IMG/VR virus record: IMGVR_UViG_3300048672_001051
Location: 124,001 to 188,000 of that record
Reading direction: 5' to 3' (one strand)
Length of the DNA stretch: 64,000 bases
The position numbers and the translations under genes were made by a program. Below the pieces are notes generated by a model, which saw nothing but the letters and a program-made list of their open reading frames with translations, was not told the DNA's origin and ran no database searches. Shown here in pieces: positions 32,290 through 58,800 of this stretch (position 1 is the stretch's first letter; every line of letters begins with the position of its first letter).

Positions 32290-32640
32290 CTAGTATTACA
32301 CCTCCATTTTTTGTGTTAATTATTATAACACAAAAATTAAAAATGTAAATTTAAAAATGGACTATATCTTCACTCCTAAATAAGGAGGCTTCCTGTTTCG
32401 GGTGATAAAACCCTACTCTACTCGCTTCTTCGGGTAGTTAACCCTATGCTTTCGATAGTCTCTGAACTCTCATCTGTATTTATTATACAGATGCTCAGCT
32501 GCGGATTAATTCATCAATAAACTTTTTACTATACCTAGGTCATTACGCTAGCCCTTATCTATATCACTATGATAAGTTAGTATTTATTGATTAAGAACAG
32601 TCCCCGCAATTAAGGAAGTTTTACTTGGGCCATTTTGTTA
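31273..32640 (-). mobile_element. Group I intron, 1368 nt
   Basis: P AATTGCGGGGA 32601-32611, Q AATCCGCAGC 32498-32507, R GTTCAGAGACTAT 32455-32467, S AAGATATAGTCC 32359-32370; P1 TTGGGT/GCCCAA with U.G at splice site; terminal G. Confidence 0.93.
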
Positions 32641-44081: not shown

Positions 44082-44546
44082 TTATAAATATCTAAGATTG
44101 TGTATAGGTACAACTTCACCTGCAATGTAAAAAATTGAAGAGTATCTTTGTCCAGAATTTACATTTGAAATTCGTGCAGTAGATCCGTGTAATAAGCCAT
44201 TTTTAAAAAATCCTTCAGGTACAGTTGAATTATAAGCTCTGCGGCTATTTTTAAAATTACCGAACATACGTCTATTTGAAAGGTAAAAAGAATCTTTAAA
44301 TGTTGCAACAGTTGATTCATAATCAGTAACACACTTACAAGATTTTGGGATATTAGGATACGTATTATAAAAAACAACTTGATTATAAAAATATTTTAAA
44401 ATATTTTCAAATTGAAGTAGTCTGTTAGTTTTTAATAAAAATTTTAAAATTTTTATTTTTTCAATTAAAGGATACCTTGAAGTCATCCTGTGAGAATTAT
44501 TTAAAATAAATGTGTAATATTCTTCAGCTTCACTTCTTTTTAACAT
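44082..44546 (-). CDS. LRxL-array paralog 1
   Basis: LHG...YIAG...LRYL. Confidence 0.8.
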   Translation of the reverse strand: MLKRSEAEEYYTFILNNSHRMTSRYPLIEKIKILKFLLKTNRLLQFENILKYFYNQVVFYNTYPNIPKSCKCVTDYESTVATFKDSFYLSNRRMFGNFKNSRRAYNSTVPEGFFKNGLLHGSTARISNVNSGQRYSSIFYIAGEVVPIHNLRYL

Positions 44547-44547
44547 A

Positions 44548-44934
44548 TTATAAATCTCTTAGTTGTAAATATTTTGGTAATTCTTCATCATTAATGATAA
44601 AAGAAACTAAACTAGTAGCCATATCTTTAAAAGCTCCGTGAAGTTCATAGCTCTCTAAAAAATACATTTTATTTTGATAAGCATGTTGAAAGCCACTAAC
44701 TTGTAAACCAATTTTATTTAATTTAGAAGTTAAATAGTATGAGTTATATCTACTCTTACAAAAACCTGACGGAATTTTAAGAGAACCTTTTCGACAATAA
44801 ATATCATGAAGTATCGCTCTAAAATACGCATTAAAATCTTTAGGGTTTTCCATTGTAATTAGATGTTCGTACTGGCTTTTATTAAACTCTTTAAGGTTTA
44901 ATAAAAAATCTATATATTCTTTTGTATATATCAT
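44548..44934 (-). CDS. LRxL-array paralog 2
   Basis: LHG...LRDL. Confidence 0.8.
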   Translation of the reverse strand: MIYTKEYIDFLLNLKEFNKSQYEHLITMENPKDFNAYFRAILHDIYCRKGSLKIPSGFCKSRYNSYYLTSKLNKIGLQVSGFQHAYQNKMYFLESYELHGAFKDMATSLVSFIINDEELPKYLQLRDL

Positions 44935-44951
44935 ACTTTAAACCTGTAACT

Positions 44952-45305
44952 TTATAAATGTGCTAAATTTGTTATATTTAAAACTAGTCGTTTATTTATA
45001 TAAAAAGAATATTTTTTAGTATATTTTTCAAAGTAGCAGCCGTGTTGATTCCCACAAGTTAAAAAAGAATTTACATATAAACTTTTAGAAATTCCGAAAA
45101 TATAATTTTCGGAATGTTGATAAAATTCAACATTTCTCCATTTAGCAAAACCTGCTTTTTTAAAATGTTTTCTTAAATCTTTAAATAAATTAAGCCTGTA
45201 GAAACTATAACGCATTAAAATATCAAAATCTACACAAGAACCTACTTTAGCAGTTTTTATCAGGTCAGTATACAAATCAGTTAAGTATCTTTCGTTCATA
45301 CTCAT
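44952..45305 (-). CDS. LRxL-array paralog 3
   Basis: QHG...YIN...LAHL. Confidence 0.8.
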   Translation of the reverse strand: MSMNERYLTDLYTDLIKTAKVGSCVDFDILMRYSFYRLNLFKDLRKHFKKAGFAKWRNVEFYQHSENYIFGISKSLYVNSFLTCGNQHGCYFEKYTKKYSFYINKRLVLNITNLAHL

Positions 45306-45306
45306 A

Positions 45307-45708
45307 TTAAAGCTCTCTTAAATTTGAAATTTTTAATCTTTGATTATTTATTGCAAAATGTGTTTTTTGATATTCTGATGCAACTGCGCCCAAGAATCTG
45401 TTAGCCACAACAAAGCCAGTTCTCCTTGTAGTGCTAGTACAAAGACCTATTGCGTCACATTTAGTGGTTAAAAAACCTGACAGGCCAGAATCACTTTTAA
45501 ATTTACCAGCTAAAGGTTGTTTATAATCCCAAGCAATTGTTCGATTACCAGTTGTTTTGTTAAGATAAACTATAGACCGAGCATACTCCCAAAACATTTT
45601 TTTACTTTTAATTCCTAAAAAATATTTATTATTAAAGTACTTTTTATCCCAATTTTTTGTAACAAATTTACTAGCTTCTGGGTCGTGTTGCCAATCAAAT
45701 GTTTGCAT
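45307..45708 (-). CDS. LRxL-array paralog 4
   Basis: KMFWEYAR...LREL. Confidence 0.8.
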   Translation of the reverse strand: MQTFDWQHDPEASKFVTKNWDKKYFNNKYFLGIKSKKMFWEYARSIVYLNKTTGNRTIAWDYKQPLAGKFKSDSGLSGFLTTKCDAIGLCTSTTRRTGFVVANRFLGAVASEYQKTHFAINNQRLKISNLREL

Positions 45709-46106
45709 TATAAGTATCTCAAGTTAGTAATTGGTTTTTTGTATCCAGCTATGTAGTGCGTCAGCTGAGCGTTATAAACCTCTGCACCATGTTGTGCTGA
45801 ACTATTTAGATGGTACTTAATTCTATCACCACGAACTGATTTGACTAAACCAATTGTTTTTGCCTTAGCTGTAATAATATAGCTAATATCTGAGTTAGGT
45901 GAATACGCAATTCCACCTATATTATAAAAAATATCTAACAGATCATATCTTAGCATGTCTCTAACAAGAGAATAAAATTCTTTAGAATTTTTATTTCTAG
46001 TTGTATTTTTAAAAATTCCTATTAGTTGTGGAGTTACTTTTGAACAAGCACTAAAGCCATCTAAAATTTCTTGCGGTGTTGAATTATTAAAATCAATTTT
46101 TTTCAT
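45708..46106 (-). CDS. LRxL-array paralog 5
   Basis: QHG...YIAG...LRYL. Confidence 0.8.
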   Translation of the reverse strand: MKKIDFNNSTPQEILDGFSACSKVTPQLIGIFKNTTRNKNSKEFYSLVRDMLRYDLLDIFYNIGGIAYSPNSDISYIITAKAKTIGLVKSVRGDRIKYHLNSSAQHGAEVYNAQLTHYIAGYKKPITNLRYL

Positions 46107-46483
46107 AAATGTCTCAAATGTGTAGCTGCTACACGTTCACCATCAATATAAAGTTTTAAAGAATTTGCGACAGCACCATGACGGATGTCGTTAGCATAAA
46201 ATATTCTTAAATCGCCTTCCTCGAAAATCCCAAGCATGCCACTATTTTTTAAATAATAATTACAACCGTAAGTACTTCGTATAAAGCCATTTTTTAATTT
46301 AGCTAGTAACCTATGATTAAATAGAGAAGGGTATACTTGAATCGTATTTCTCAAGAATCCCCAAAAATATTTAGGATTTTTTTCGTATGAATATTTTATC
46401 AAATATTTATAATAAAGATTGGAAGTTCCTAAATGTTTTTTTATAAGTTTAATAGCATCAAAAACATCTTTAATTTCATGCAT
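46103..46483 (-). CDS. LRxL-array paralog 6
   Basis: KYFWGFLR...RHG...LRHL. Confidence 0.8.
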   Translation of the reverse strand: MHEIKDVFDAIKLIKKHLGTSNLYYKYLIKYSYEKNPKYFWGFLRNTIQVYPSLFNHRLLAKLKNGFIRSTYGCNYYLKNSGMLGIFEEGDLRIFYANDIRHGAVANSLKLYIDGERVAATHLRHL

Positions 46484-46484
46484 A

Positions 46485-46922
46485 TTACAAATACCTTAAA
46501 TGTGTACAGGATACAACTTGATCAGCAATATTAAAATAAGTTTCTACGTAAGAGTGATATGTGTCTGTCGCGTCGTCATAATCTTCTCCGCTGTAAATAG
46601 TAGCTCCATGCTCCCCAACTGAAGACTTAAACCACTGCGAATCTGAAGTGGTAATTAAGCCTCTGGTGCTATTGTGGTAAGAACTGTAGTAGTGTGTTGG
46701 TGGAGAATGTGTAGACTTGAGTGGATCATAACTCTCAGCCGGTCCAGAACTTACTGTTATAGTTTCGTTTTTAAATGTTCTTCTAATTTTTAAATATCTA
46801 ACATACCGCCAAAATGATTTTAGATCTTTTTCTAATAATAATTTTTCAAGCATTATTACTTCATGCTGATAATTTTTAATTGAGCTAAGCTCTTTAAGTA
46901 TTTCAAGAGGTGTACTATACAT
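46485..46922 (-). CDS. LRxL-array paralog 7
   Basis: KSFWRYVRY...EHG...LRYL. Confidence 0.8.
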   Translation of the reverse strand: MYSTPLEILKELSSIKNYQHEVIMLEKLLLEKDLKSFWRYVRYLKIRRTFKNETITVSSGPAESYDPLKSTHSPPTHYYSSYHNSTRGLITTSDSQWFKSSVGEHGATIYSGEDYDDATDTYHSYVETYFNIADQVVSCTHLRYL

Positions 46923-46942
46923 TATAAATCTCTAAATTTTAA

Positions 46943-47353
46943 TTACAAGTATCTTAAAGATGCCGTATCAATAGGTCTGTTGTTAATCCAAAAGCGTTTT
47001 GTTCTGTTAGGTTCATATAAACTCCCATGCACAGAACAACGTTCTTTGCAGAAATATTTCCTTTTTGTAGGTGATAAGTGAAAACCAATCAGTTCAAGAT
47101 TTTTTTTACGATAATAGATTTCACTATTAAAGTCTAAGCTGTTGACATATTTACCAGCACCTAACTCTTTTTTAAATTTTTTTAAAAATTTAGAATTCTG
47201 GGAGTTATAATTTTCTAAAAAATGCCTAATTCTTGGAATAATATTTTTTAAATCTGTAGAATTTTCAATTTTAATATTATTAAAATAATTAAAAAAAACA
47301 GTTTGTTCAGAAATTTTTTTAACAAATTTTCTAAATTTTTTTTCGGTTAACAT
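46943..47353 (-). CDS. LRxL-array paralog 8
   Basis: VHG...WIN...LRYL. Confidence 0.8.
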   Translation of the reverse strand: MLTEKKFRKFVKKISEQTVFFNYFNNIKIENSTDLKNIIPRIRHFLENYNSQNSKFLKKFKKELGAGKYVNSLDFNSEIYYRKKNLELIGFHLSPTKRKYFCKERCSVHGSLYEPNRTKRFWINNRPIDTASLRYL

Positions 47354-47370
47354 TATAAAGTCCTTAGTAG

Positions 47371-47772
47371 CTACAAACTTCTTAAAGAAGTTATTAATGT
47401 TTGGTGCCCATTTAGATATAAAGATATATCATTAAAATGTTTAGAAGCGCCGTGTTGTTTAGTATCTAGTAAAAAATACATATATTGCTTATTTTGAAAT
47501 ACTAATTTATGTCTACGATTTGGTGGACCTATAGTGTAAATAGCATAAGTAATTTTATTAACTTTTAAATATACGCTACAAACATAACCAAAACTGCTGT
47601 TAAAATTTGGTAATTTAATATACTTTCTTGATGCTAAAAATCTAACATAAGCCCAAAAGTCTTTAAGATTACCATTACTACTTAAAGACAGCATATAATT
47701 TGTTCTACTTCCAAGAGTATATTTATCAATTTCATTTAGTACAGTTTGAATTTTATTCATATTACAATTCAC
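47371..47772 (-). CDS. LRxL-array paralog 9
   Basis: KDFWAYVRF...QHG...LRSL. Confidence 0.8.
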   Translation of the reverse strand: MNCNMNKIQTVLNEIDKYTLGSRTNYMLSLSSNGNLKDFWAYVRFLASRKYIKLPNFNSSFGYVCSVYLKVNKITYAIYTIGPPNRRHKLVFQNKQYMYFLLDTKQHGASKHFNDISLYLNGHQTLITSLRSL

Positions 47773-48187
47773 TTAATTTTAAATTTGAAATATGTTTATC
47801 ATTAACATAAATTAGATAAGAAGTAGTACCAATCTGCGCCATACCGTGAGACTCATCCTGTTTTTTATAAGTTTTTTGATTTGACATACTAAGTAAACCA
47901 AAAGTATTGTCAGAACTATTAACATAACCTACAACTTTTAAGCTGTGCGGTGCTATAAGGTGTCCAGCAATTTTTAATTCTAAATCTTCTAGATTAAAAA
48001 AAGTGTAACGTTTATAAAATCGCAGAGTACCAAAAAATTTCATTAAATTTTTATAATTATTTAATGAAATTTTTTTCAAAGATATCAAAGCATTTGTTGC
48101 AAAGTATGAACTAACTACAGAATTTTGCTCTGCAATAGCCTCTATTTCACCTAATATTTGTAAACATGAATCTTTAGTTTCTAGCAT
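47762..48187 (-). CDS. LRxL-array paralog 10
   Basis: SHG...YVN...LSEL. Confidence 0.8.
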   Translation of the reverse strand: MLETKDSCLQILGEIEAIAEQNSVVSSYFATNALISLKKISLNNYKNLMKFFGTLRFYKRYTFFNLEDLELKIAGHLIAPHSLKVVGYVNSSDNTFGLLSMSNQKTYKKQDESHGMAQIGTTSYLIYVNDKHISNLKLSEL

Positions 48188-48202
48188 AATTTGTAATAAT
48201 CC

Positions 48203-48583
48203 TTAAAGATTTCTTAATGTTCTATATGCAGGTACCCTACAGCCTTCAAAATAGAAGGTTGTTATATTACCTGTCTTAGAGCAGCCGTGTATAACATTTT
48301 TAGAATAAAAATTAACTCTAATAAAAGATACTGAAAAACCTACACAACTATTATTACTTGTTAGGTAGTAACTTACTGTATTATCTGTTGAAATTATAGC
48401 ACCATAGCTTTTAGAGCACAGGTACATCTCAAATAAGCCTCTAGATATTTTTTTTAAATAGCGCACTTTAGCCCAAAAATACTTATATTCACCAGCATCT
48501 AAATGTTTTTTTAAAGTTTGGATACTCTTATCTTCGTATATATCTAAATCTATTATATATTTCAAAACATCTTGTGGGGTCAT
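48203..48583 (-). CDS. LRxL-array paralog 11
   Basis: KYFWAKVRY...IHG...LRNL. Confidence 0.8.
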   Translation of the reverse strand: MTPQDVLKYIIDLDIYEDKSIQTLKKHLDAGEYKYFWAKVRYLKKISRGLFEMYLCSKSYGAIISTDNTVSYYLTSNNSCVGFSVSFIRVNFYSKNVIHGCSKTGNITTFYFEGCRVPAYRTLRNL

Positions 48584-49065
48584 AAGTCTCTCAATCTTAA
48601 GTTTTTTGGGGCGTAGCAGTCTGGTTTAAATAAAAATTTAAATTTTATAGACTGGGCTTCGTATACAGTACCGTGTGACCCAGTAAATTTTGTTTGAAAA
48701 TGTTTAGAATATGTATGCACTACTAACCCTACGTTGTTTAAATTTTTACCATTTGCGTAATAACTACAGTTTTCTTTATAATAATATCCAGACATATTTA
48801 AATTAAGTCTAAAATAGGTTGGAAGTTGATAATTTATATATCTTGCATACCCCCAAAATTTTTTAAAATCTTTGTCCATAAAAAATTTTAAAAGTTTATC
48901 GTATTTTGCGCTTGATACCGTGTCTAGTGCATAAAAATATTGCAAAACTTTTAAAGGATTAACAATAACTGTGTAGTTAAAGCTTTTATAAAAAAGCATT
49001 AAAGTTTTTGTAGAATTATCATATATCTTAATATTTAAAATATAGTTTATAAGCTTATTAAACAT
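48580..49065 (-). CDS. LRxL-array paralog 12
   Basis: KKFWGYARY...SHG...LRDL; start uncertain. Confidence 0.8.
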   Translation of the reverse strand: MFNKLINYILNIKIYDNSTKTLMLFYKSFNYTVIVNPLKVLQYFYALDTVSSAKYDKLLKFFMDKDFKKFWGYARYINYQLPTYFRLNLNMSGYYYKENCSYYANGKNLNNVGLVVHTYSKHFQTKFTGSHGTVYEAQSIKFKFLFKPDCYAPKNLRLRDL

Positions 49066-49067
49066 AG

Positions 49068-49466
49068 TTATAAGTACCTTAAATTTGAAATATGTATAAG
49101 GTCACCGTCTAGATAATAAGCTACCTCAGAGGAGTTGTGCTGATATGTGCCGTGCCTTGAAGAGTTTTTTAAAAAATAATTAAAATAATATTTATTGCTT
49201 TTAACTAAGCCAATTAAATCTCTAGCTGTATTTATAGTGTATAGTGCGTTTTCACCCGGAGTGTTTGCACTCCCCGCTACATTATAAAAGTTAGTTAATT
49301 CATAAAAATGTACTATATATCTTAAATATTTTAAAGCTTCGTTAAACATTAAATTTTTAATATAGTCTTCAGCAGTTTTTATATGACTAAAGTGTATCTG
49401 AGGTATTTGTTTTAAAATTTTTAAAATCTGCTGAGGTTTTAAATTATTAAAATCTGTTGTAATCAT
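49068..49466 (-). CDS. LRxL-array paralog 13
   Basis: RHG...YLDG...LRYL. Confidence 0.8.
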   Translation of the reverse strand: MITTDFNNLKPQQILKILKQIPQIHFSHIKTAEDYIKNLMFNEALKYLRYIVHFYELTNFYNVAGSANTPGENALYTINTARDLIGLVKSNKYYFNYFLKNSSRHGTYQHNSSEVAYYLDGDLIHISNLRYL

Positions 49467-49834
49467 AAATTCCTTAAACCTGTATACGGTATTTTTTTAC
49501 CCATCAGATATAACCTTGTATTCTTGCGATCAACATCATCTTTAAAACTTCCATGTTGCATATTATTACTTGTAAAATATTTTAAATATTTATATTCTAA
49601 ATAGCCGACTTTATAAAAATCCTTAGAAGTGCCTATAAAAAAAGTATGCCAATTATTAATATCTCTAGTTTGACCGGTTTTAAATTTGCCTAGGTTTAGA
49701 TGAGGAATTAAATAATATCTAGCGCGCTCCCAAAATAATTTAATATCATTTGTAAGGTAAATTTTATTCAGTGCATTAAAAATTGAAGCATATTTTAAAT
49801 ATTCTAAAACTTTTTCTGGTGTGTCGTAAATCAT
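49463..49834 (-). CDS. LRxL-array paralog 14
   Basis: KLFWERARY...QHG...LRNL. Confidence 0.8.
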   Translation of the reverse strand: MIYDTPEKVLEYLKYASIFNALNKIYLTNDIKLFWERARYYLIPHLNLGKFKTGQTRDINNWHTFFIGTSKDFYKVGYLEYKYLKYFTSNNMQHGSFKDDVDRKNTRLYLMGKKIPYTGLRNL

Positions 49835-49846
49835 TTTATAAGCCTA

Positions 49847-50278
49847 TTAAAGATTTCTTAAAGTAGTTTTTAAACTTAACTTTTGTCCATAAATATAGTG
49901 AAAAGCTGAAGTAATTTTATAATATTCAAAAATGTTGATATCAAAAAATTGTCCATGAGGCAAACTTGCAGTGTAGTAACCTTTTTTTGTAGCCCTTTTA
50001 TAAAGTCCAAATCTTTCTGAGTTATTTTTAATATAATAGTTTGGTGCGTCATTATAGTCGAACGCTACATAACCTTTAGCAGTATGTGAATTTAAAAATT
50101 TTGCATCTAAGCGCCAACGCATAGTGTTAATATATCTAATATTATTCCAAAAATTATTTAAATCATCGTTAATAATATTTGTAACTAATTTTTCATAAGT
50201 TTTATTATTAAGATTATTTTTTATATATTTTAAAATATCAAATATTTCTCGAGCTTCTTCAACACTTACTTTACCCAT
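49847..50278 (-). CDS. LRxL-array paralog 15
   Basis: NNFWNNIRY...PHG...LRNL. Confidence 0.8.
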   Translation of the reverse strand: MGKVSVEEAREIFDILKYIKNNLNNKTYEKLVTNIINDDLNNFWNNIRYINTMRWRLDAKFLNSHTAKGYVAFDYNDAPNYYIKNNSERFGLYKRATKKGYYTASLPHGQFFDINIFEYYKITSAFHYIYGQKLSLKTTLRNL

Positions 50279-50279
50279 A

Positions 50280-50669
50280 TTATAATTCCTTTAAAGCTAC
50301 ATTTAAAATATTATTGTTAACCAACAACTCGTAACGTCGCCTATTTAGTTTTGTTGTTGCAGGTAAAACTCTACCATTCATAAAAGTTTTATGACTGCGG
50401 TTGGCTATTACGAGGCCAACTTTTAAGTTATTACTTTTTATGTAAAAAGTGCTTAACATACTATGAGTTATAACAAAAGCTTTACCGATGTTGTAAATAC
50501 CTAAATCAATTTTTAATTTATAATAGGATTTTATTCCACGCGCAAACATCCAAAATAACTTATCGTTTTTAGATAACAATTCACGTCTTAGCTTATAAAA
50601 TTCTAAATAAACTTGAGAATGATTTCTTAAAAGTTCATCCATAAATTCTTCAGGTGTGTCAAAAACCAT
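50280..50669 (-). CDS. LRxL-array paralog 16
   Basis: KLFWMFAR...LKEL. Confidence 0.8.
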   Translation of the reverse strand: MVFDTPEEFMDELLRNHSQVYLEFYKLRRELLSKNDKLFWMFARGIKSYYKLKIDLGIYNIGKAFVITHSMLSTFYIKSNNLKVGLVIANRSHKTFMNGRVLPATTKLNRRRYELLVNNNILNVALKEL

Positions 50670-50681
50670 TGCATAATGCTC

Positions 50682-51068
50682 CTATATATATCTTAAATTA
50701 TTTACATTCAAATTTGAACCATTAATAAAATATACACCTGAAACTTTACTAAATCCGTTTAGCATGTTTTTATTATAAAAAGAACTCGAAGAATCACGGT
50801 TGTGTAGTCCAAATTTTACAAAATTTTTTTTAAAATAGTAAAAATTTCTAAAAGAGTTGCTTGCAAAACGTCCGGTAGATATTTTAGAATTTTTACTGAC
50901 AGGTTCTAAATCTAAAATACAGTTATTAGTATATCGGATAATTTCCCAAAACTTTTTATAATCACCTTCGTTAATACTATTTAATAATCTTACACAGAAA
51001 GAGTCTTTAGCGCCTAAATTATTTTCAATATATTTAACTATATTAAATATTTCTACAACTTCAGTCAT
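50682..51068 (-). CDS. LRxL-array paralog 17
   Basis: KKFWEIIRY...FING...LRYI. Confidence 0.8.
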   Translation of the reverse strand: MTEVVEIFNIVKYIENNLGAKDSFCVRLLNSINEGDYKKFWEIIRYTNNCILDLEPVSKNSKISTGRFASNSFRNFYYFKKNFVKFGLHNRDSSSSFYNKNMLNGFSKVSGVYFINGSNLNVNNLRYI

Positions 51069-51070
51069 AA

Positions 51071-51445
51071 CTACAAATCTCTTAATTTTAAAAATTTTGG
51101 TAAAGGTTTATTATCAATAATAAACCTACCCCTAGTATTTTGTCCGTGATAGCAGTCATTTTTAAAATATTGTACTTTACGGTCATTATAATGTTTTCCA
51201 AATCTCTGTCGACGACTGTTTACATAAAATTTATCGTTAAATAAACTGTATTTTGCAAAACCAGCTTTACGTTTATCGGATAAAATTTTTAACTCTTGAG
51301 TAAATTCAATATGTCTACAAATTTTCCAAAAATCTTCTAAAGATTTTTGGAAAATAACTTCAAGAATTTTTTTAAGACCGGGAGATTTATTACCCAAGCT
51401 TTTTTGAAATTCTTTATATGTTTGAAATATTTCTTCATGATCCAT
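51071..51445 (-). CDS. LRxL-array paralog 18
   Basis: EDFWKICRH...YHG...LRDL. Confidence 0.8.
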   Translation of the reverse strand: MDHEEIFQTYKEFQKSLGNKSPGLKKILEVIFQKSLEDFWKICRHIEFTQELKILSDKRKAGFAKYSLFNDKFYVNSRRQRFGKHYNDRKVQYFKNDCYHGQNTRGRFIIDNKPLPKFLKLRDL

Positions 51446-51446
51446 T

Positions 51447-51872
51447 TTATATATACCTTAAGTTTTTTACAGATAGAGGTCGGCCATTAATAATAATTCC
51501 AGTTTCACTGCTAGTACCATGATACTGACTATTATTAAAAAAATTTAATTCGCCATTCCAGTTATCAAAACCTAAAATACAATGGTCTTTAACATAATTA
51601 GTTACAGTTAAAGTTTTACCAGAAATAGCTTTACCAGTAGGATATTTATTAAATATCCTACTTAGGTTTAGCTCTTCATTTAAATTTAAATTTAAATAAA
51701 TATGTCTAACTACACACCAAAACAAATTTATATTTGGAGGTTCAGCCAAAAGGCTTAGTCTTAATACTTCAACACTAACTTGTGTATCATAAGCTAAAGA
51801 ATCGTAACAGTTATCTTCAGCTATAAGATTATTAATATAGTTTAAAAATTCTTCACATTCTAATATGTCCAT
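51447..51872 (-). CDS. LRxL-array paralog 19
   Basis: LFWCVVRH...YHGT...LRYI. Confidence 0.8.
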   Translation of the reverse strand: MDILECEEFLNYINNLIAEDNCYDSLAYDTQVSVEVLRLSLLAEPPNINLFWCVVRHIYLNLNLNEELNLSRIFNKYPTGKAISGKTLTVTNYVKDHCILGFDNWNGELNFFNNSQYHGTSSETGIIINGRPLSVKNLRYI

Positions 51873-52279
51873 TATAAATACCTTAAGTTAGTAACATTGC
51901 ACGCGACAGCATTTACATAAAATCTTCTTGTGTGTTGACAATAACCGTGAACTTTACCTAAAAATCTAGCGCGGTACAAATAGCCTGATACTCCTGGGAG
52001 CCGAATAACGCCAAAAACTATAGAATTACTATTTACGTAAATTTTAAGGTCTTCAGCATGTCGGTTACAGACTCCAGCTTCATATTCATATAGTGTAAAA
52101 GTAAAATTACATAAATATTTAAAGTATCTTGCAACTTCCCAAAATCTTTTGAAAGACTTTTTAATTAAAAGATTTTCCAAATATTCATAATCACGGTGGC
52201 TTAAGTGTATAAATCTTTCTAAAACTTCAGTTGCTTTTTGAAACTCACTCATTCTTATAAATACCTTAAATTTGAACAT
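51872..52279 (-). CDS. LRxL-array paralog 20
   Basis: KRFWEVARY...VHGY...LRYL; likely start MSEFQ. Confidence 0.8.
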   Translation of the reverse strand: MFKFKVFIRMSEFQKATEVLERFIHLSHRDYEYLENLLIKKSFKRFWEVARYFKYLCNFTFTLYEYEAGVCNRHAEDLKIYVNSNSIVFGVIRLPGVSGYLYRARFLGKVHGYCQHTRRFYVNAVACNVTNLRYL

Positions 52280-52638
52280 TGAATATAAATATTTTTTATA
52301 TAAAATTCAGGGTTAGTCAGACTGCCTGAGCAGCCATGTAAAGTATCATTCACGTGAAATTGCTTTTTTTCGCAGTAGTTGTGTCGCCCAATTCTTTTAA
52401 AATTACTGTTAAAATAACAAAATTTTTTGTCTGTTAAATCTAGACTATATCCACTATTATATTTTCCAAAAGATACGTCGTACCTAAAACCGTGCTTAAT
52501 ATAACGAGCTACACTCCAAAATTTTTTTAAGTCTCCAGTTATTAAAATATTATTTAAAGTTTTTAATATACGTGTTGGGTACTTAAGTGTAGCCATATGG
52601 TCTATTATTACGTTTGGATCTTCAATAACTTGTAACAT
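52255..52638 (-). CDS. LRxL-array paralog 21
   Basis: KKFWSVARY...LHG...LRYL. Confidence 0.8.
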   Translation of the reverse strand: MLQVIEDPNVIIDHMATLKYPTRILKTLNNILITGDLKKFWSVARYIKHGFRYDVSFGKYNSGYSLDLTDKKFCYFNSNFKRIGRHNYCEKKQFHVNDTLHGCSGSLTNPEFYIKNIYIQCSNLRYL

Positions 52639-52639
52639 T

Positions 52640-53002
52640 TTAAAGCTCTCTTAATTTTAAATCGTAAATTGGCTTACCGTTAATTTTGAAACCTAAATAA
52701 CCTGTGCCATGCAATTTATCTTTATTTACAAACAAATGTCCAATTAAACATTTGTTTAGACCTACTCGCTCACTTTTTGAATTTACGTAAAAAGTTATTT
52801 GACTACTCATATTTTGTGAAAAACCAGAAGTGTGTGAATTTAACTTTAAGTGTGGACACAGACCTTTTAAAAACCTTGCATATATCCAAAAAAATTTAGT
52901 ATCACAACTTTTAACAATAGCTTTTAAATTTTTAAAAATAGTGTCATTAGACTCAAACTTAATTTCGTTTAAAAAAGTTAATATTTCTAATTCTTGATTC
53001 AT
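52640..53002 (-). CDS. LRxL-array paralog 22
   Basis: KFFWIYARF...LHGT...LREL. Confidence 0.8.
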   Translation of the reverse strand: MNQELEILTFLNEIKFESNDTIFKNLKAIVKSCDTKFFWIYARFLKGLCPHLKLNSHTSGFSQNMSSQITFYVNSKSERVGLNKCLIGHLFVNKDKLHGTGYLGFKINGKPIYDLKLREL

Positions 53003-53004
53003 GC

Positions 53005-53388
53005 TTATAAATGCCTTAAACTTGTTATAGGTCGACTATTACTTTTTATATAAAATTTTTTTGTAAAATTAGAATAGCCGTGTGCATAACCGTCAAGTCT
53101 AAATGTTTCACAAGATTTTCTCTCTAAAAGAAAAGTTTTACCAAATTTTCTGCCAGTACTATTTAAATAGTAAGCCCAATTATTATCTGATCTTTTGGCA
53201 AGACCAGACTCATATTCATATAATCCAATAGGAAGTCTTGATTCATATTTAATATATCTAGCTATTTCCCAAAATATTTTAAAGCATTTCTGCTTTAAAA
53301 TATAATTAAGATTAATGCAAATAATTTTGTAGCGCGCAAAATTTTCAAAATATTCTAAAACTCTGGTTGCTTTTTCAGATTCATTCAT
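53005..53388 (-). CDS. LRxL-array paralog 23
   Basis: KIFWEIARY...AHGY...LRHL. Confidence 0.8.
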   Translation of the reverse strand: MNESEKATRVLEYFENFARYKIICINLNYILKQKCFKIFWEIARYIKYESRLPIGLYEYESGLAKRSDNNWAYYLNSTGRKFGKTFLLERKSCETFRLDGYAHGYSNFTKKFYIKSNSRPITSLRHL

Positions 53389-53389
53389 A

Positions 53390-53788
53390 TTACAAGTACC
53401 TTAAGCTATTAACATGGTTAATAAAATTATTTAAAAAATATTTTTGCATAGTAAAATTATAACCGTGAAGTTTGTTTTGAATAGTGAAATAACGTTGAGG
53501 ATCTTTTCTATTGTCAACAACTTTACCTACTCGTCTGCTAATAGAATTAACATACGCATAGTAGGTATTTGAGCTGTTTATAGCTTTTCCAGCGCTATAT
53601 TCTGCTAAGTCTAAAGTTATTAAAGATTGATATTTTAATTTCAAATATCTTACATACTCCCAATAACGTTTAAAAATTCCTGTCTTTAAACCAAAATTAT
53701 ATTGCTCAGTTAAAAACTGCAAATTAAATTTCTCTTTAGAATTTTTAATTTGCATAAAAATATTTGCACCAAATGTCAAAACATTCAT
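53390..53788 (-). CDS. LRxL-array paralog 24
   Basis: KRYWEYVRY...LHGY...LRYL. Confidence 0.8.
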   Translation of the reverse strand: MNVLTFGANIFMQIKNSKEKFNLQFLTEQYNFGLKTGIFKRYWEYVRYLKLKYQSLITLDLAEYSAGKAINSSNTYYAYVNSISRRVGKVVDNRKDPQRYFTIQNKLHGYNFTMQKYFLNNFINHVNSLRYL

Positions 53789-53791
53789 CAG

Positions 53792-54226
53792 TTAAAGCTC
53801 TCTTAATTTTAAATTAAAAACATCTTCGTCATTAACACTAAATCCGAGACTATGAGTACCATGGCAGGTACTGTCTGTACAGTAGTACTTATGATCATCT
53901 GACGAGATATGCAAACCTATTGTAAAATTATCAGATTTTATATAACTAGTTGTTATAAGTTTTATCGGATCTATAATAGCACCTACTGGGTACTTATTAT
54001 AAAATTTATCTAAGTCTGCGTACCAACTAAATATATCATATGCATATCTGACTACGCCCCAAAAAAAGACTGAATTTAGAGGTTTTTGAGTTGCAATAAA
54101 ATCTAGCCTATTTACAATATCTATAAGTGTTGGTGAACACTCACCTTCAATACTTATTTTCACTATCTCTAAAACTTCTTTGAAGTATTTAACAACCTCT
54201 AAACACTCTTTTAATTTCAAATCCAT
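53792..54226 (-). CDS. LRxL-array paralog 25
   Basis: FFWGVVRY...CHGT...LREL. Confidence 0.8.
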   Translation of the reverse strand: MDLKLKECLEVVKYFKEVLEIVKISIEGECSPTLIDIVNRLDFIATQKPLNSVFFWGVVRYAYDIFSWYADLDKFYNKYPVGAIIDPIKLITTSYIKSDNFTIGLHISSDDHKYYCTDSTCHGTHSLGFSVNDEDVFNLKLREL

Positions 54227-54227
54227 A

Positions 54228-54620
54228 CTATAAATGCCTTAAATGCAGGTCAATCATGTCGCCATTAATAATAAAATAACTTTTATCGAGAGTATTACTT
54301 TGTCCATGGCTTGTACCTTTAAAACGAAAGCTGTGAGTTTTAATCCAGCCGGCTGCTACACAATTACCTAGTCTTATACCTGAAGTTGTACAGTAAAATT
54401 TTCCAAAAAATTTATTTGGTACTTGGCTAAAACCTTCAGAATATTTTTTTAAATCTACATTTTTCGTATGACAATTTTTTAAATAACGAGCTGCTTGCCA
54501 AAATACTTTAGCACTTCTTTCAATATTAATGACATTTAATAAAATTTTATAAGCTTCCTCATTTTCTTTTTTAAAGTCTGTTAAAACTTTAAAAATTTCT
54601 AACGCTTGAACTTCATTCAT
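54228..54620 (-). CDS. LRxL-array paralog 26
   Basis: KVFWQAARY...SHG...LRHL. Confidence 0.8.
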   Translation of the reverse strand: MNEVQALEIFKVLTDFKKENEEAYKILLNVINIERSAKVFWQAARYLKNCHTKNVDLKKYSEGFSQVPNKFFGKFYCTTSGIRLGNCVAAGWIKTHSFRFKGTSHGQSNTLDKSYFIINGDMIDLHLRHL

Positions 54621-54622
54621 AT

Positions 54623-55003
54623 TTACAGATACCTGAGAGATTTGATACGATTAGGAATACCGTTTAAATAATATTTTTTATCTATTTGGTCATAGCCGTG
54701 AAGCTCACCTTTAATATAAAAATATTCACGATTATCAAAAATAGCGCGACCAAATCTTTCGAGAGAGCTTGATAAATATCCTGGACGTCTAGACTCTGAA
54801 TTAAATATAGGTCCAGCAGTGTATTCTTTTAAATCTATTTCATGTCCAGCACACGCTTTAAAAAATCTCAGTATCATCCAGTATTTTTTAAAATTGGCAG
54901 TTTTTAATGCCAATTTAAATTCGTCTTTTAGTTCACTGCCTAGCTTATGACGCGTGTCCGGAATAAGTTGAAAAATATGCTGTGCAAATAGTTCTTCTCT
55001 CAT
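54623..55003 (-). CDS. LRxL-array paralog 27
   Basis: KKYWMILRF...LHGY...LRYL. Confidence 0.8.
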   Translation of the reverse strand: MREELFAQHIFQLIPDTRHKLGSELKDEFKLALKTANFKKYWMILRFFKACAGHEIDLKEYTAGPIFNSESRRPGYLSSSLERFGRAIFDNREYFYIKGELHGYDQIDKKYYLNGIPNRIKSLRYL

Positions 55004-55455
55004 TATAACTCTCTTAGTCTTAAAGTATTTTTTAGTGCGCGATCATTTATATTGAAACTAATACTATTATTAATACTGCAAGTCCCATGCTTCATATCTT
55101 TAAGTCTATAACTTGTACTCTCCAAGTAATAATCCAAACCTATTAGTTTAAAATCTGTTGTAAGATAACTTACAATTTTTAAATCTGTCGGTGATCTAGC
55201 CAAACCTGCAGGATATTTATTTAAAGTTTTGTCGAAATAATAAAAATAATTTGCCAAATTTAAATAGACATAACGGGTTATCTGCCAAAAACAAATAATA
55301 CTTGGACTAGGAGATTTAAAAATGTAGTCTAAAATTTTACAAGCAAGCGATAATTCATCAATATATTTTATACGAACATTTTTAAGCATTTCAGGCGTTT
55401 CTAAATATTCTTTAAAATATCTTAAGATTTTTTCAGAGTCTTCTAGTTGTGTCAT
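55003..55455 (-). CDS. LRxL-array paralog 28
   Basis: CFWQITRY...KHGT...LREL. Confidence 0.8.
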   Translation of the reverse strand: MTQLEDSEKILRYFKEYLETPEMLKNVRIKYIDELSLACKILDYIFKSPSPSIICFWQITRYVYLNLANYFYYFDKTLNKYPAGLARSPTDLKIVSYLTTDFKLIGLDYYLESTSYRLKDMKHGTCSINNSISFNINDRALKNTLRLREL

Positions 55456-55457
55456 AA

Positions 55458-55835
55458 TTACAAATCTCTCAGTTTTAAATTAGAATTTAAAACACAATTA
55501 TTTATTTTTAAAATAAATATTTTTGAAGCCTTATTAACATACACGCCGTGCATTCCACCGTTATTTTGAAAAAATTTTAAATTAATATTGTCATATTCGC
55601 CGAAAGACCTGAGATAACTATTAAAATAATATTTTCGATTAGTGCCAGGCGATACATACAAACCAGCTCTTGTTAGAAAATTTGGCCGTACTGGACGGCC
55701 AACATCATATTGTAATTCTCTTAAAACACCTAGGAATTTAGTTGTCTCACCGTCAGCTAACATTTTTAAACATAAAATATATGCATACGTATTTTTCGGA
55801 ATATTTTGTAATAAATCTAAAAATAATATTTTCAT
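55458..55835 (-). CDS. LRxL-array paralog 29
   Basis: YYFNS...MHG...LRDL. Confidence 0.8.
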   Translation of the reverse strand: MKILFLDLLQNIPKNTYAYILCLKMLADGETTKFLGVLRELQYDVGRPVRPNFLTRAGLYVSPGTNRKYYFNSYLRSFGEYDNINLKFFQNNGGMHGVYVNKASKIFILKINNCVLNSNLKLRDL

Positions 55836-56242
55836 TATAAATGCCTTAATTCTCTAGTTTTTACATCACGGCTGTTAATAATAAAAATAAAGCCTCTCTC
55901 AATGTCAAAAACCCCATGTTTTCGACTTTGTTTGTAATGCCTTCTAGCTACACTATTAAATTTAGCCATACCAATTACTTTGTCTTGTTTGTTTACATAA
56001 TAATGATAATTACCTAATATTGATGTAGCTAAGCCTGAACGCATGTGGCCTATATCTACACCCGAAGGCTTTATAGCTTTATGGTAATTATAATGTCTAA
56101 TAATCTCCCAAAATTTTTTAAAATTGTTAGTAGCAATTAAACTTTCTAATTTTCTAGTAGTTTTTTTGTCAATACTTGGTTGATTATACTCTTGTATAAT
56201 TTTTAAAATTTCATAAGGATTTGTAGTAATCATTTGCCACAC
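55835..56242 (-). CDS. LRxL-array paralog 30
   Basis: KKFWEIIRH...KHG...LRHL. Confidence 0.8.
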   Translation of the reverse strand: MWQMITTNPYEILKIIQEYNQPSIDKKTTRKLESLIATNNFKKFWEIIRHYNYHKAIKPSGVDIGHMRSGLATSILGNYHYYVNKQDKVIGMAKFNSVARRHYKQSRKHGVFDIERGFIFIINSRDVKTRELRHL

Positions 56243-56254
56243 CTTTGTTAATAT

Positions 56255-56674
56255 TTATAAATACCTTAGATTTTTTTTGTAAAAAAAATCATTATTAATA
56301 TACATGGTAGTAATATTATTCAGGAAAGCCATGCCGTGAAAATAATTATTTTTAAAAAATAAACATTCTTTATTAATACCAGTCTTGTGTAAACCTATTC
56401 TTAAGCCTAAGGAGTTAATATAAAAACTTTCATTGCCTGAGTTTAGGCTAACAAAACCGCTTGCCTTACTTCCTAGCGGTATTTTTAAATCATAATTTTG
56501 ATTAACATACCGACATACTTCCCAAAATTTTTTAGTATTATTTTGATAAATCAATTGTGATAGTATTGCAGGGTAATCTTTTAAAGTAATATACTTTTTT
56601 GTATATTTTTCAACTTCTTTTATAATTTCTAAGGGTTGCATTTCTAGAGATTCCTTAAAGACTTTGTTGGGCAT
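56255..56674 (-). CDS. LRxL-array paralog 31
   Basis: KKFWEVCRY...FHG...LRYL; likely start MQPLE. Confidence 0.8.
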   Translation of the reverse strand: MPNKVFKESLEMQPLEIIKEVEKYTKKYITLKDYPAILSQLIYQNNTKKFWEVCRYVNQNYDLKIPLGSKASGFVSLNSGNESFYINSLGLRIGLHKTGINKECLFFKNNYFHGMAFLNNITTMYINNDFFYKKNLRYL

Positions 56675-57039
56675 TCAGAATTATTAATATAATTTTGAAA
56701 ATAAGAATTCACAGTACGAACTCCGTGTAATTTTCTATTTTTAAAAAATAATTTTGCTTTATGATGGATTGATAAACCCACCACCTTACCTTTACTATTT
56801 AAATAGTAACTACTAGATAAGTTATGCATACAAGCTAAGCCCACTAAACGTGGGCCTGTAATATATTTTAAATCAAATTCATTTTTTAAATATCTGTACA
56901 GTTCCCAAAATTCTTTAACATTTTTAGTAGTACTTAAAAGATTGTAAACATAATGATTACAGTCAGCAGGATCTTTTAAAATTAATTTTAAAAGATCATA
57001 TATTTCAATAATTTCGTGTTGTTCAATTGTCTTAGTCAC
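56644..57039 (-). CDS. LRxL-array paralog 32
   Basis: KEFWELYRY...LHG...LRNL. Confidence 0.8.
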   Translation of the reverse strand: MTKTIEQHEIIEIYDLLKLILKDPADCNHYVYNLLSTTKNVKEFWELYRYLKNEFDLKYITGPRLVGLACMHNLSSSYYLNSKGKVVGLSIHHKAKLFFKNRKLHGVRTVNSYFQNYINNSECPTKSLRNL

Positions 57040-57408
57040 TTATAAATACCTTAAGCTCCGCCATGTCAGTAAATTGCCTTTAAGCCAGAATTTATGAAAT
57101 CTATCATCGCAACCATGCCTATAGCCTTGACAATAAAAAACTCTATCTCGAGAGTTTCTTGCAAATCCAAATTCTCTAGCTTCTCTATTAATATAACTTA
57201 AAAAATTAGAATTAGAGTTATAAATTTTACCAGCAGTATACTCACCTAAAATTAAATTAAACTTTTCTGTTTTTTTAATTCTACGAGCTACACTCCAAAA
57301 TTCTTTAAAATTTTGGTTAAGAAGACATTCTTGCAAAAGTCTAGTGTCAATATGGTAACTAAATCTTAAGTGGTCTAAAACATTTTTAGCTGATTCTAAT
57401 TCAGTCAT
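57040..57408 (-). CDS. LRxL-array paralog 33
   Basis: KEFWSVARR...RHG...LRYL. Confidence 0.8.
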   Translation of the reverse strand: MTELESAKNVLDHLRFSYHIDTRLLQECLLNQNFKEFWSVARRIKKTEKFNLILGEYTAGKIYNSNSNFLSYINREAREFGFARNSRDRVFYCQGYRHGCDDRFHKFWLKGNLLTWRSLRYL

Positions 57409-57409
57409 A

Positions 57410-57886
57410 TCATAAATACCTTAGCCTAGTCACATTACTTCGTATTCCATCAATATAAAAATCAGGTGCATTGAATCTTTTATATGCGCCATGTCTAATA
57501 TTATTTTTAAAATAACATGATTCATTATCAGACCTTTGACACAGACCTATCATGCCACTATTTTTTAATTTATAATAAAAATTATTATAACGCATAAACT
57601 TACCATTAAAATAATGTTGTAAGTTTATTTCAGGGCAATAAGAAGTACTAATATATTTTATTTTAGGCCAAAAATTTTTGGTATTATTGTCTGATAGAGC
57701 ATTTTTAAAAAGTCGCAAAATATCTACAGACTTTAAAGATCTTTGATAAACAGTTCTAACTATATCTTCACGAGTGTGACACTTTTTTAAAATTTCTTTT
57801 GTATTACAAGGATTGTAAAAAAAAGGAAAAGGACTTGGTGACAATATGGTTGAATAAGCCATAGACGTAATATCTGTAGGGTACAT
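57410..57886 (-). CDS. LRxL-array paralog 34
   Basis: KNFWPKIKY...RHG...YIDG...LRYL. Confidence 0.8.
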   Translation of the reverse strand: MYPTDITSMAYSTILSPSPFPFFYNPCNTKEILKKCHTREDIVRTVYQRSLKSVDILRLFKNALSDNNTKNFWPKIKYISTSYCPEINLQHYFNGKFMRYNNFYYKLKNSGMIGLCQRSDNESCYFKNNIRHGAYKRFNAPDFYIDGIRSNVTRLRYL

Positions 57887-57898
57887 AAAATATCCGTT

Positions 57899-58117
57899 TT
57901 AAAGTTGTAATAGTGTAATATTTTTTGAAAGTTTTTTACCAGCTATATATAATGTAATATTCTCTTGATCCTGTAGCGAAGAACCATGTCTTCCAGCTAT
58001 AGAGTTAAAGAAACTTTCAAAAGAGTCCATATATAACCCAACAATTCTTGCCAAACTATCTCTAAAATAATTGCCGTATTCGCCAGTATAGTAACCTGCA
58101 ACTTCAGATTTTTCCAT
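57899..58117 (-). CDS. LRxL-array paralog 35, lacking the N-terminal helical half
   Basis: 72 aa: GYY...IVG...RHG...LYIAG...LLQL. Confidence 0.7.
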   Translation of the reverse strand: MEKSEVAGYYTGEYGNYFRDSLARIVGLYMDSFESFFNSIAGRHGSSLQDQENITLYIAGKKLSKNITLLQL

Positions 58118-58276
58118 AAAAATGACTCGTTATTGTAAACAAAAAAGGGGTTTTAAGCTAAGATGCTAAAGCTTTGCACCCCTTAAAATAAGTATACTTA
58201 AATAATATTGCTTAAAAAAATGACTCGTTATTGTGATAGAAAAATTTTTTAAAAACAATTCTAACAACAATAACGA
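58118..58276. repeat. 19-bp direct repeat and partial inverted copy upstream of the array
   Basis: AAAAATGACTCGTTATTGT at 58118-58136 and 58216-58234; ACAATAACGA at 58267-58276. Confidence 0.75.
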
Positions 58277-58310
58277 TAAAAAATAAAAAGTCAAAAAAGC
58301 CTTATAGCTC

Positions 58311-58592
58311 TTAAAGCTTTAAAAAGAATTTATTAGAATTTTCTAAATTAGAAAGCAGATATACGTGCTTAATATTCAGAAAAGAGTCAATAAATGAATA
58401 ACCTAAAATATTATTTTGATTTGAAGTTTTAAGAACCTTCAAATCTTTAATAAGATTCAAATTATTAATGAAATAATTCAAATAACTATGATTACCTTGA
58501 ACATTTGGAAAATTAGAATATAAATCTTCTAAAATTTTCCGAGTAGTATTCAAGTTACGAGCACGTGTTAAAACATACCGCGGGCGAGTCAT
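58311..58592 (-). CDS. Hypothetical protein (start MTRPRY)
   Basis: GGAGG SD before ATG at 58592; 93 aa. Confidence 0.6.
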   Translation of the reverse strand: MTRPRYVLTRARNLNTTRKILEDLYSNFPNVQGNHSYLNYFINNLNLIKDLKVLKTSNQNNILGYSFIDSFLNIKHVYLLSNLENSNKFFLKL

Positions 58593-58770
58593 TAAAACCT
58601 CCACAAAAAGAAAGAATTTTTGATACGGTAAACCAGAGATTGGGGGATTGTTTGCACTAGTCCAAGGGGGTTAGACCAGAATTGCAAATAAAAGAACCAC
58701 TACTACATAAGTTTTCCAAGACTACTCTAACGATCTTCAATGATCATTGATGCTATAATGCTTTTTAATT

Positions 58771-58800
58771 GGTGTTTCGGAAGTTAACTTCCGAAACACC
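58771..58800. terminator. Perfect 30-bp palindrome after the RNAP stop
   Basis: GGTGTTTCGGAAGTT|AACTTCCGAAACACC. Confidence 0.65.

Follow-up and report, generated by a model that had tools for sequence, protein, structure and literature searches.

The 64,000-nucleotide stretch of DNA analysed here (the window) covers positions 124001-188000 of contig Ga0485282_000001, a 229,656 bp sequence of an uncultured phage from Joint Genome Institute (JGI) metagenome sample 3300048672, held in IMG/VR as UViG 3300048672_001051. The phage is a jumbo phage of lytic type, and 6% of its ~230-kb genome is taken by a tandem array of 35 diverged paralogous genes on the minus strand (44082..58117, 98.9% coding). 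The array members are small, mostly very basic cytoplasmic proteins, modelled as a three-helix bundle followed by 3.5 MORN-like hairpins, and end in a shared L-R-x-L tail whose codons appear to double as the ribosome-binding site (RBS) of the next gene. It is suggested, with a probability of roughly 45%, that the array is a binder repertoire for host conflict, in which one scaffold carries many surfaces acting on molecules of the host, or of a competitor, early in infection.

An earlier reading of this DNA, made from the letters without database searches (the sequence-only reading), had described 35 consecutive minus-strand open reading frames (ORFs) at 44082-58117, 34 of them of 117-161 amino acids (aa) and one of 72 aa, and this layout was recovered. 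With the ATG starts called by JGI for five of the genes, the lengths are 115-161 aa, the 72-aa member aside. On these starts, seven of the 34 junctions are overlaps (-1/-4 nt) and 18 have gaps of 0-3 nt; the other gaps measure 7 nt (one junction) and 12-21 nt (eight junctions). In all, 25/34 overlap or are separated by 3 nt or fewer, as the description 'mostly abutting or overlapping' had it. From composition, stops are expected at 0.089 per codon (one per 11 codons), which gives a 117-codon open frame a chance of ~2e-5; only two ORFs of at least 60 aa are found in the remaining five frames of the array region.

The members are as divergent as had been claimed, with a mean pairwise identity of ~20% and BLASTP E-values (E) below 1e-3 in only about 127 of the 595 member pairs. 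Each is nevertheless recognised by a profile made from the other 34, at 18.8-84.3 bits, whereas none of 200 shuffled versions of each member exceeded 13.3 bits. These scores make the homology secure despite the low identity. A six-frame scan of the whole 64-kb window with the family profile returned these 35 and no others. Homologous genes lying head to tail on one strand are the mark of a lineage-specific tandem multigene family, and this is the arrangement found.

The motifs that had been picked out by eye (K-x-FW-x3-R-Y, G...YY, HG and LRxL) are real, as their frequencies over 45 sequences demonstrate. In the helical block these are K38 71%, F40 84%, W41 73%, R45 91% and Y46 53%; in the beta part G63 96%, Y75 82%, G84 98%, H101 91% and G102 98%; and in the tail L124 100%, R125 87% and L127 91%. 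The conserved columns make up the hydrophobic core of the helices, one Gly or HG and one aromatic pair per hairpin, and L124/R125/L127, and nearly all other alignment columns have an entropy above 3 bits. A fixed scaffold with a hypervariable surface had been proposed, and the column statistics agree, the core and turn residues being conserved and the rest nearly free to vary. No catalytic-looking constellation of residues was seen, nor any enzyme family match in Pfam or NCBIfam. The conserved H101 of the HG motif is encoded by CAC in 21 of 41 members, though the GC content at third codon positions (GC3) of the array is 19%.

A confident AlphaFold2 model was obtained for the 127-aa member m21 (52255..52638, minus strand) with the 45-sequence alignment, at a predicted local distance difference test score (pLDDT) of 94.8 and a predicted template-modelling score (pTM) of 0.85. 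Helices span residues 8-17, 22-34 and 37-51; seven strands follow between 63 and 119, making 3.5 hairpins, and near the C-terminus there is a short helical turn at 124-126. Over the last seven residues (121-127) the mean pLDDT is 83. The strands are predicted to form tandem beta-hairpins in an elongated antiparallel sheet. Three units share the pattern [FY]-[FY]-h-N-x ... h/H-G (Y74-Y75..G84; F94..H101-G102; F112-Y113-I114-N115), with irregular spacing and only one conserved Gly per unit. The MORN repeat has ~23 residues and a signature of the type Y-x-G-x-W-x-x-G-x-x-x-G-x-G.

In a Foldseek search of predicted viral structures, the matches to the model were nearly all giant-virus proteins with MORN repeats (Orpheovirus, Solumvirus, pithoviruses and Tunisvirus), with probabilities of 0.96-1.00, E of 7e-3 to 0.1 and TM of ~0.3-0.4 (normalised to the whole query), over the hairpin part only. 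In the PDB, the neighbours were the hairpin repeats of CROP and choline-binding proteins and of the SET7/9 N-domain, which are not significant (E of at least 0.16, TM ~0.2). The earlier suggestion of MORN-like hairpins therefore holds at the level of the fold, where the nearest structures are viral MORN proteins at weak E, but not at that of the sequence: hmmscan of the 35 members at E <= 1 gave no match to Pfam MORN (PF02493) or MORN_2 (PF07661), and NCBIfam gave no MORN or YwqK match on 45 members. The K-x-F-W-x3-R-Y helix had also raised the ideas of an F-box, a homeodomain or a helix-turn-helix (HTH) domain. The N-domain gave no Pfam match and no fold match, and its model in isolation (pLDDT 85) has no PDB neighbour with E < 9, so none of the three ideas is supported.

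The tail counts of the sequence-only reading stand, with 31/35 members ending in L-R-x-[L/I] and 35/35 in L-x-x-[L/I]; the four ends that lack LRx are LAHL, LSEL, LKEL and LLQL. At the DNA level the tail reads TTA AGR nAK TTA TAA, followed by an ATG within 0-3 nt, and the TTA-AGR sits 5-13 nt ahead of this next ATG. Window genes outside the array have TAAGG, TTAGAG or TAAGAGA at an equal distance from their starts, and in the stretch 4-18 nt before the start both groups of genes have an excess of the 4-mers AAGG, GAGA, AGGA and AGAG. This suggests dual coding of the LRxL tail, with TTA AGR specifying Leu-Arg and at the same time forming the Shine-Dalgarno (SD) sequence of the next gene. Such a role would account for the fixed choice of AGR and AGG codons and for part of the conservation of LRxL.

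As a control, the codons of the tail arginine, R125, were compared by Fisher test with those of R45 in helix 3, an internal arginine that is equally conserved. CGN codons are used for R45 in 15/41 cases (37%) and for R125 in 0/39 (p = 1.3e-5), while AGG is used in 3/41 and 21/39, respectively (p = 5.5e-6). All 39 tail arginines have AGR codons, and the codon use at R45 matches that of the gene bodies. Within the tails, the ratio of AGG to AGA is 19:9 at 5-13 nt from the next ATG compared with 3:9 farther away (p = 0.018). In m16, an R-to-K change in the tail (AAG GAA) retains AAGGA. Spacers of 17-20 nt carry an SD of their own. Two spacers contain copies resembling the tail, namely m08/m07 (46923..46942, minus strand), which has a non-coding AGA GAT TTA TAA just before the m07 ATG, and m09/m08 (47354-47370, minus strand), which has a similar copy. 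The one between m08 and m07 is either a free-standing RBS or the relic of a lost gene.

Translational coupling is expected to show in stops and starts that abut or overlap, and in an SD that lies within the upstream gene and restricts its codons more than the encoded residue requires; both features are seen in the array. Coupled polycistronic operons share these abutting or overlapping junctions and a purine-rich motif 5-13 nt before the ATG within the upstream gene. The array differs from ordinary operons of this kind in that the same four codons are reused at ~30 consecutive junctions, so that the RBS appears as a protein motif. No description of an RBS read as a conserved protein motif across a paralog family was found in the literature.

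There is also a constraint on the protein. The residues L(-4) and L/I(-1) are kept in 47/47 tails with varied Leu codons, and a basic residue is present at -3 in 14 of the 17 tails that are not near a start, among them that of the last gene of the array, m01 (44082..44546, minus strand), where LRYL is kept though the next gene starts 38 nt downstream. Since L-x-x-L and the basic residue persist in tails that have no gene close behind them, the protein sequence itself must matter. The most likely protein role, on the model, is a cap that closes the last hairpin. We infer a double constraint, in which the tail closes this hairpin while its codons are held as the SD of the next gene. Endoplasmic reticulum retrieval, PDZ-binding, degron and protease-site motifs were also considered for the tail and dropped, as its residues depart from the consensus of each.

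The end of the tail, TAT TTA TAA, becomes TATAAATA when read on the other strand, which had suggested a T4-type late promoter. This motif occurs 27 times in the window, where 13.9 are expected. Copies at array gene junctions lie on the plus strand at 44083, 51873, 52256, 52284, 56256 and 57041, and are probably a by-product of the tail codons; the sense-strand copies that were checked fall inside genes.

Promoter-like sites within the array are slightly above expectation (124, compared with 105.8 +/- 8.2 in shuffled sequence) and terminator-like sites there show no excess over expectation, and the array spacers are too short for promoters. Upstream, on the minus strand, there is a sigma-70-like promoter, TTGACT-16 nt-TATTGT (58267..58294), which has a counterpart, TTGACG-17 nt-TATTGT, in the one related phage that carries the family (described below); the hexamers and their spacing are kept between the two phages and the sequence of the spacer between them is not. 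A leader of 193 nt (58118..58310, minus strand) is 90% identical between the two phages. It contains two copies of a 19-nt box (58216-58234 and 58118-58136, minus strand), the second abutting the first ATG. The window has no further copy of this box. A stem-loop with a T-run (58141-58184, minus strand) separates the two copies. It is possible that the boxes and the stem-loop act as a control point. Given the lack of room for internal promoters and the conserved promoter and leader, the array is probably read as one early message by the host polymerase.

Directly upstream of the leader is a 97-aa gene (58311..58604, minus strand) that has a 93-aa ortholog in the relative and no family match. 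Beyond it, a non-coding block of ~100 nt (58622-58721, minus strand; L007:70-190 in the relative) is ultra-conserved, at 98-100% identity between the phages. By comparison, alignments of this kind put the flanking coding DNA at 74-80% identity, and the neighbouring proteins are only 30-85% identical. A long hairpin is predicted at 58651-58688. An exact 27-mer of the block has no other occurrence in viral or metagenome collections, and Rfam searches with the leader and the upstream block gave nothing near gathering scores. The block is a candidate small RNA or control element. A perfect 13-bp hairpin (58771..58800, minus strand) just past the stop of a 1207-aa gene is the likely end of the upstream transcription unit.

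It had been proposed from sequence alone that the common C-terminus is a docking or cargo-loading signal. Part of this survives, in that L-x-x-L persists without a close downstream gene. The codons, however, are explained by the RBS, and the model shows, with fair confidence, a tail folded into a helical turn and not a free peptide; the conservation of the tail can now be understood without a common docking role. In the fullest form of this idea, the members are internal or ejected virion proteins that are loaded via the L-R-x-L end and injected with the DNA. This is unlikely. Small, very basic proteins from a fast-evolving locus do recall the internal-protein region of phage T4, whose products are likewise small, basic, fast-evolving and phage-specific, and have a short shared terminal element. 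In T4, the N-terminal signal of the internal proteins is removed by the prohead protease, and at least one of them counters a host restriction system. The N-termini of the array members, in contrast, vary freely, and no other part of the alignment is as variable or as rich in indels, so a T4-type N-terminal capsid-targeting sequence is lacking. The shared element of the array is C-terminal, looks folded and overlaps the next RBS, and there are 35 homologs rather than a handful of unrelated genes. The surroundings of the array are auxiliary and RNA-repair genes, no structural gene being seen there, and its sigma-70-like promoter suggests early rather than late expression.

The tail could also serve in an adaptor. 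The N-domain, the L-R-x-L end or both would dock on a single machine (a host protease, for instance, or a complex of the phage such as the 1207-aa protein), and the hairpins would bring targets to it, following the logic of F-box proteins. It would fit with this that the two most conserved surface-capable elements are common to all members while the hairpin surfaces vary, that the tail leucines are conserved without need for an RBS, and that the members are made together. However, no F-box or adaptor domain is found by sequence, and the N-domain model has no match at E < 9. The conserved residues of helix 3 could just be packing on the sheet, consistent with the pTM of the two-domain model. 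Taken together, such an adaptor library is distinctly improbable.

The family had not been recognised by the sequence-only reading, and none of the libraries tried recognises its members. Pfam, PHROGs, NCBIfam, PDB sequences and a tblastn search of 50,697 phage records returned noise only, and PADLOC gave one member against one candidate model at E = 0.011 and no other match. A profile of the family, run against all 1.84 billion representative proteins, showed it to be near-private. There were 47 matches, of which 33 were the window's own, one was a spurious repeat protein and 13 lay on two contigs of Logan sample SRR28032195. The family is confined, in this collection, to the phage of the window and one relative known from these two short contigs, and among about 15 billion proteins just these two phage lineages carry it. 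Two metagenome scans for family relatives found none, IMG/VR scans with the 1207-aa neighbour as query returned the source contig alone, and the array is missing from the next-nearest phages with shared flanking genes (ME3 and a 254-kb contig). The ten window members examined are singletons when clustered at 90% identity. A second sample yielded a 2.7-kb Logan contig that matches window positions 50681-53424 at 100% identity, with no variation between the two. Such rarity in protein collections means that expansions of this kind can be nearly invisible to family databases.

The larger contig of the relative, L003 (7.7 kb), contains 12 complete members and one partial member. After these come orthologs, at 53-85% identity, of the four window genes just past the end of the array. 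The smaller, L007 (1.9 kb), contains the ortholog of the 97-aa gene, then a 102-aa member of beta structure only, two full members and the start of another. With these flanking orthologs at both ends, the relative has the same locus at the same place. Its array has at least 16-17 members, on two fragmentary contigs that do not assemble it fully.

The first gene of the array, m35 (57899..58117, minus strand), encodes the 72-aa member, the beta-hairpin half without the helical domain, and matches profile positions 63-122 only. The 102-aa first member of the relative (L007:654-962) matches positions 66-128, and the two match each other by BLASTP at E = 5e-5. The gene m35 is therefore not a random fragment, the relative having the same kind of beta-only first member.

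In a maximum-likelihood tree the members from the relative interleave with those of the window (9 label changes, compared with 9.9 in shuffles), and four ortholog pairs are supported, m20/r08, m12/r11, m08/r12 and m19/r04. The paralogs thus arose before the two phages diverged. Gene order is partly retained. The ortholog pairs are 34-38% identical, apart from m20/r08 at 60%, compared with the 53-85% of the four flanking genes; m20 (51872..52252, minus strand, 126 aa from its ATG) is the sole member with a well-conserved ortholog. Non-synonymous divergence (dN) is 0.58-0.72 for array orthologs and 0.10-0.43 for flanking genes, so that by these comparisons the array evolves faster than its flanks. 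Pairwise ratios of dN to synonymous divergence (dS) are 0.35-0.85 and never exceed 1. The best full-length paralog pair in the array is 37% identical. Recent duplication or gene conversion was considered and rejected, there being no long DNA repeats of high identity and just short motif-coding stretches in common. On the downstream side of the gene orthologous to the last member in the relative, the window has seven more, m01-m07, and the least typical members are among them.

The fast change of sequence could be that of a functionless relic, the product of a past duplication (a genomic accordion, or selfish or neutral expansion) that is now drifting and decaying. Points of this kind are the lower GC content of the array (27.6%, compared with 34.4% for the rest of the window; GC3 19% and 24%), its codon use, unlike that of the rest of the window, and the fit to the family profile, which is poorest in m01-m04. 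In the relative, r03 (L003:1007-1404) is frameshifted in a run of ten A, and its second frame goes on to an HG...LRNL end; this may be real decay or a homopolymer read error. Against decay, all 35 frames are open despite the expected density of stops, core and turn residues are conserved in paralogs that predate the split of the two phages, and the relative still has orthologs, several of them in the same order, as well as the promoter and the leader. The junctions also keep a working RBS geometry. It is very improbable that the array is such a relic.

The array favours AGA and TTA codons, and the tRNA-Arg(UCU) and tRNA-Leu(UAA) of the phage read AGA/AGG and TTA/TTG. These four codons dominate the array and not the other genes of the window. 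The composition of the encoded proteins is unusual as well. They are rich in K, R, Y and N and carry a mean net charge of about +8, and the isoelectric point (pI) is at least 8.4 in 31/35 members, compared with a median of 5.9 for other genes. The four acidic members have a pI of 4.9-6.1, and two of them, m19 and m25, belong to a subgroup with a long N-terminus.

This charge, together with the conserved basic residues K38, R45 and R125, is what would be expected if the members coat or sequester RNA, tRNA, DNA or anionic lipid, with paralogs that differ in the sequence or structure preferred. A neighbourhood rich in genes for tRNAs, aminoacyl-tRNA synthetases (aaRS), RNA ligase, Ro/TROVE and RNA repair would suit such binding, and eukaryotic MORN repeats are reported to bind phospholipids in work cited by a review of giant-virus repeat-protein families (PMC5753266). 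On the other side, no known nucleic-acid-binding fold was recovered and the N-domain alone has no PDB match, the four acidic members do not share the charge, and 35 specificities are hard to motivate for generic charge binding. Binding of nucleic acid or membrane by charge is thus rather unlikely as the role of the family.

The reading of the array as a binder repertoire brings these observations together. In the proposed sequence of events, the host RNA polymerase would read the 35 genes early, as one long message from the conserved promoter. Translation would be coupled from gene to gene, with TTA AGR xxx TTA stop serving as the SD of the next gene, and the members would be made together, each recognising a different host or competitor molecule. 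The repertoire would then serve host takeover, counter-defence or host range, in the way proposed for the repeat-protein expansions of giant viruses and poxviruses. The conserved core with its variable surface, the basic composition and the lack of an enzyme match are in favour of this, as are conflict-type neighbours for NAD salvage, Ter proteins, RNA repair, Ro/TROVE, tyrosyl-tRNA synthetase (TyrRS) and 15 tRNAs. A more specific version, which is possible if doubtful, is a library of inhibitors or adaptors in one coupled early operon, each hairpin surface neutralising a different defence or competitor protein or RNA or handing it to a common machine. This would be a bacteriophage counterpart of the host-range families of giant viruses and poxviruses, on a new MORN-like scaffold of two domains.

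Several points weigh against the binder repertoire. There is no relative of known function, and the repertoire, while the most plausible reading, is argued from the anatomy of the array, its neighbourhood and analogy. The strong positive charge could mean binding of nucleic acid or membrane and not of protein targets. The fold matches are statistically weak (E of at least 7e-3) and cover only the C-terminal half, and the promoter is a consensus match only. The dS values of 0.7-1.8 are saturated, so the higher dN cannot be assigned to positive as opposed to relaxed selection. Finally, AGR alone is also used in 12 Arg tails far from a start, which the SD does not by itself predict unless the spacers are recent.

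Repeat-protein multigene families of giant viruses have been reviewed (PMC5753266). The MORN families of these viruses (Orpheovirus, pithoviruses and marseilleviruses) are the closest known system by fold and by mode of expansion. As in these, the C-terminal two thirds of the array proteins are stacked hairpins with an 'aromatic-aromatic-h-N-x ... h/H-G' unit, and the expansion within one large viral genome is strong. The array members differ in having no Pfam MORN match, 3.5 irregular hairpins of ~18-21 residues and an extra three-helix N-domain; in addition, the host is a bacterium and the copies form one uninterrupted coupled operon. The top PDB neighbours, choline-binding repeats and the CROP repeats of clostridial toxins, also build an extended binding surface from repeated hairpins. 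Those modules bind carbohydrate or choline, however, and form long extracellular arrays within one polypeptide.

Bacterial polymorphic-toxin loci contain tandem 'polyimmunity' arrays of diverged immunity proteins, including a MORN variant of the YwqK type. The likeness lies in the many small diverged paralogs of one binding scaffold side by side, each presumed to act against a protein of its own, and in the use of a MORN-type scaffold for inhibition by binding. In logic, these arrays and the T4 internal-protein locus are the nearest comparisons. Unlike these, the array has no YwqK or MORN match by NCBIfam and no adjacent toxin genes, and it lies in a phage genome rather than a bacterial conflict island. 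As the members fail sequence membership of MORN and lack the N-terminal signal of the T4 internal proteins, they are filed as a new family. No description of this array, or of one of comparable size in a bacteriophage, was found in the literature.

Giant eukaryotic viruses and poxviruses characteristically have large tandem families of diverged repeat proteins, which have been connected with host range and with evasion of immunity. If the members of the phage array are specific binders, they would offer a ready panel of small, stable inhibitors of bacterial defence or physiology on a single scaffold, and a new family with a confidently predicted fold for the engineering of binders. The tail carries a more general caution, since a C-terminal motif common to abutting paralogs can be the RBS of the next gene read as protein. 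Motifs that arise in this way are exposed when their codons are set beside those used for the same amino acid at another, equally conserved position.

The array adjoins a 45-kb block of auxiliary genes (NAD salvage, RNA repair, tRNAs and Ter proteins) of a kind associated with virus-host conflict. The genes that follow are on the minus strand unless stated. The NAD-salvage set comprises an NMNAT-like nucleotidyltransferase (20181-20717), NAMPT (32621-34096), a protein resembling phosphoribosyl pyrophosphate synthetase (34106-34933) and a Nudix protein (36119-36514). It resembles the NAD-reconstitution pathways of phages that are reported to act against NAD-depleting defence. RNA ligase 1 of T4 type (3620-4729), a TerF-type vWA protein (15125-15979), a HAD 'Swiss-army-knife' RNA-repair domain (20710-21258), Ro/TROVE (25273-26736), TerD (26761-27357), a PP-loop ATPase (28541-29167) and TerC/DUF475 (35048-36091) are also present, and these seven together constitute an RNA-repair and Ter-type stress block in a phage. 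The window further encodes TyrRS, a K+ channel and a minimal class-II aaRS-like protein. The 15 tRNA genes lie between 7161 and 23961 and include the tRNA-Arg(UCU) and tRNA-Leu(UAA) mentioned above; between tRNA genes there are HNH/HTH endonuclease-like ORFs on the plus strand (10392-10904, 11971-12567 and 13241-13999). A Dda/Pif1-type helicase (21292-23829) is split by an intein with a LAGLIDADG endonuclease domain, and its nearest annotated relatives are in Acinetobacter phages MD-2021a (52%) and vB_AbaM_ME3 (46%). By these relatives, Moraxellaceae are tentative candidates for the host.

A 195-aa protein (42860-43447, minus strand) is 84% identical in the relative and ~40% identical in many large phages. 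It looks like a minimal aaRS-like domain, its role unassigned, and some of its homologs have Pfam matches to class-II aminoacyl-tRNA synthetases. The 1207-aa protein upstream of the array (58811-62434, minus strand) has no match in Pfam, PHROG, NCBIfam or PDB sequences and is 31% identical to vB_AbaM_ME3 proteins. A D-C-D-G-D stretch within it is reminiscent of the metal-binding loop of two-barrel RNA polymerases. In ME3, the counterpart gene is interrupted by an endonuclease gene.

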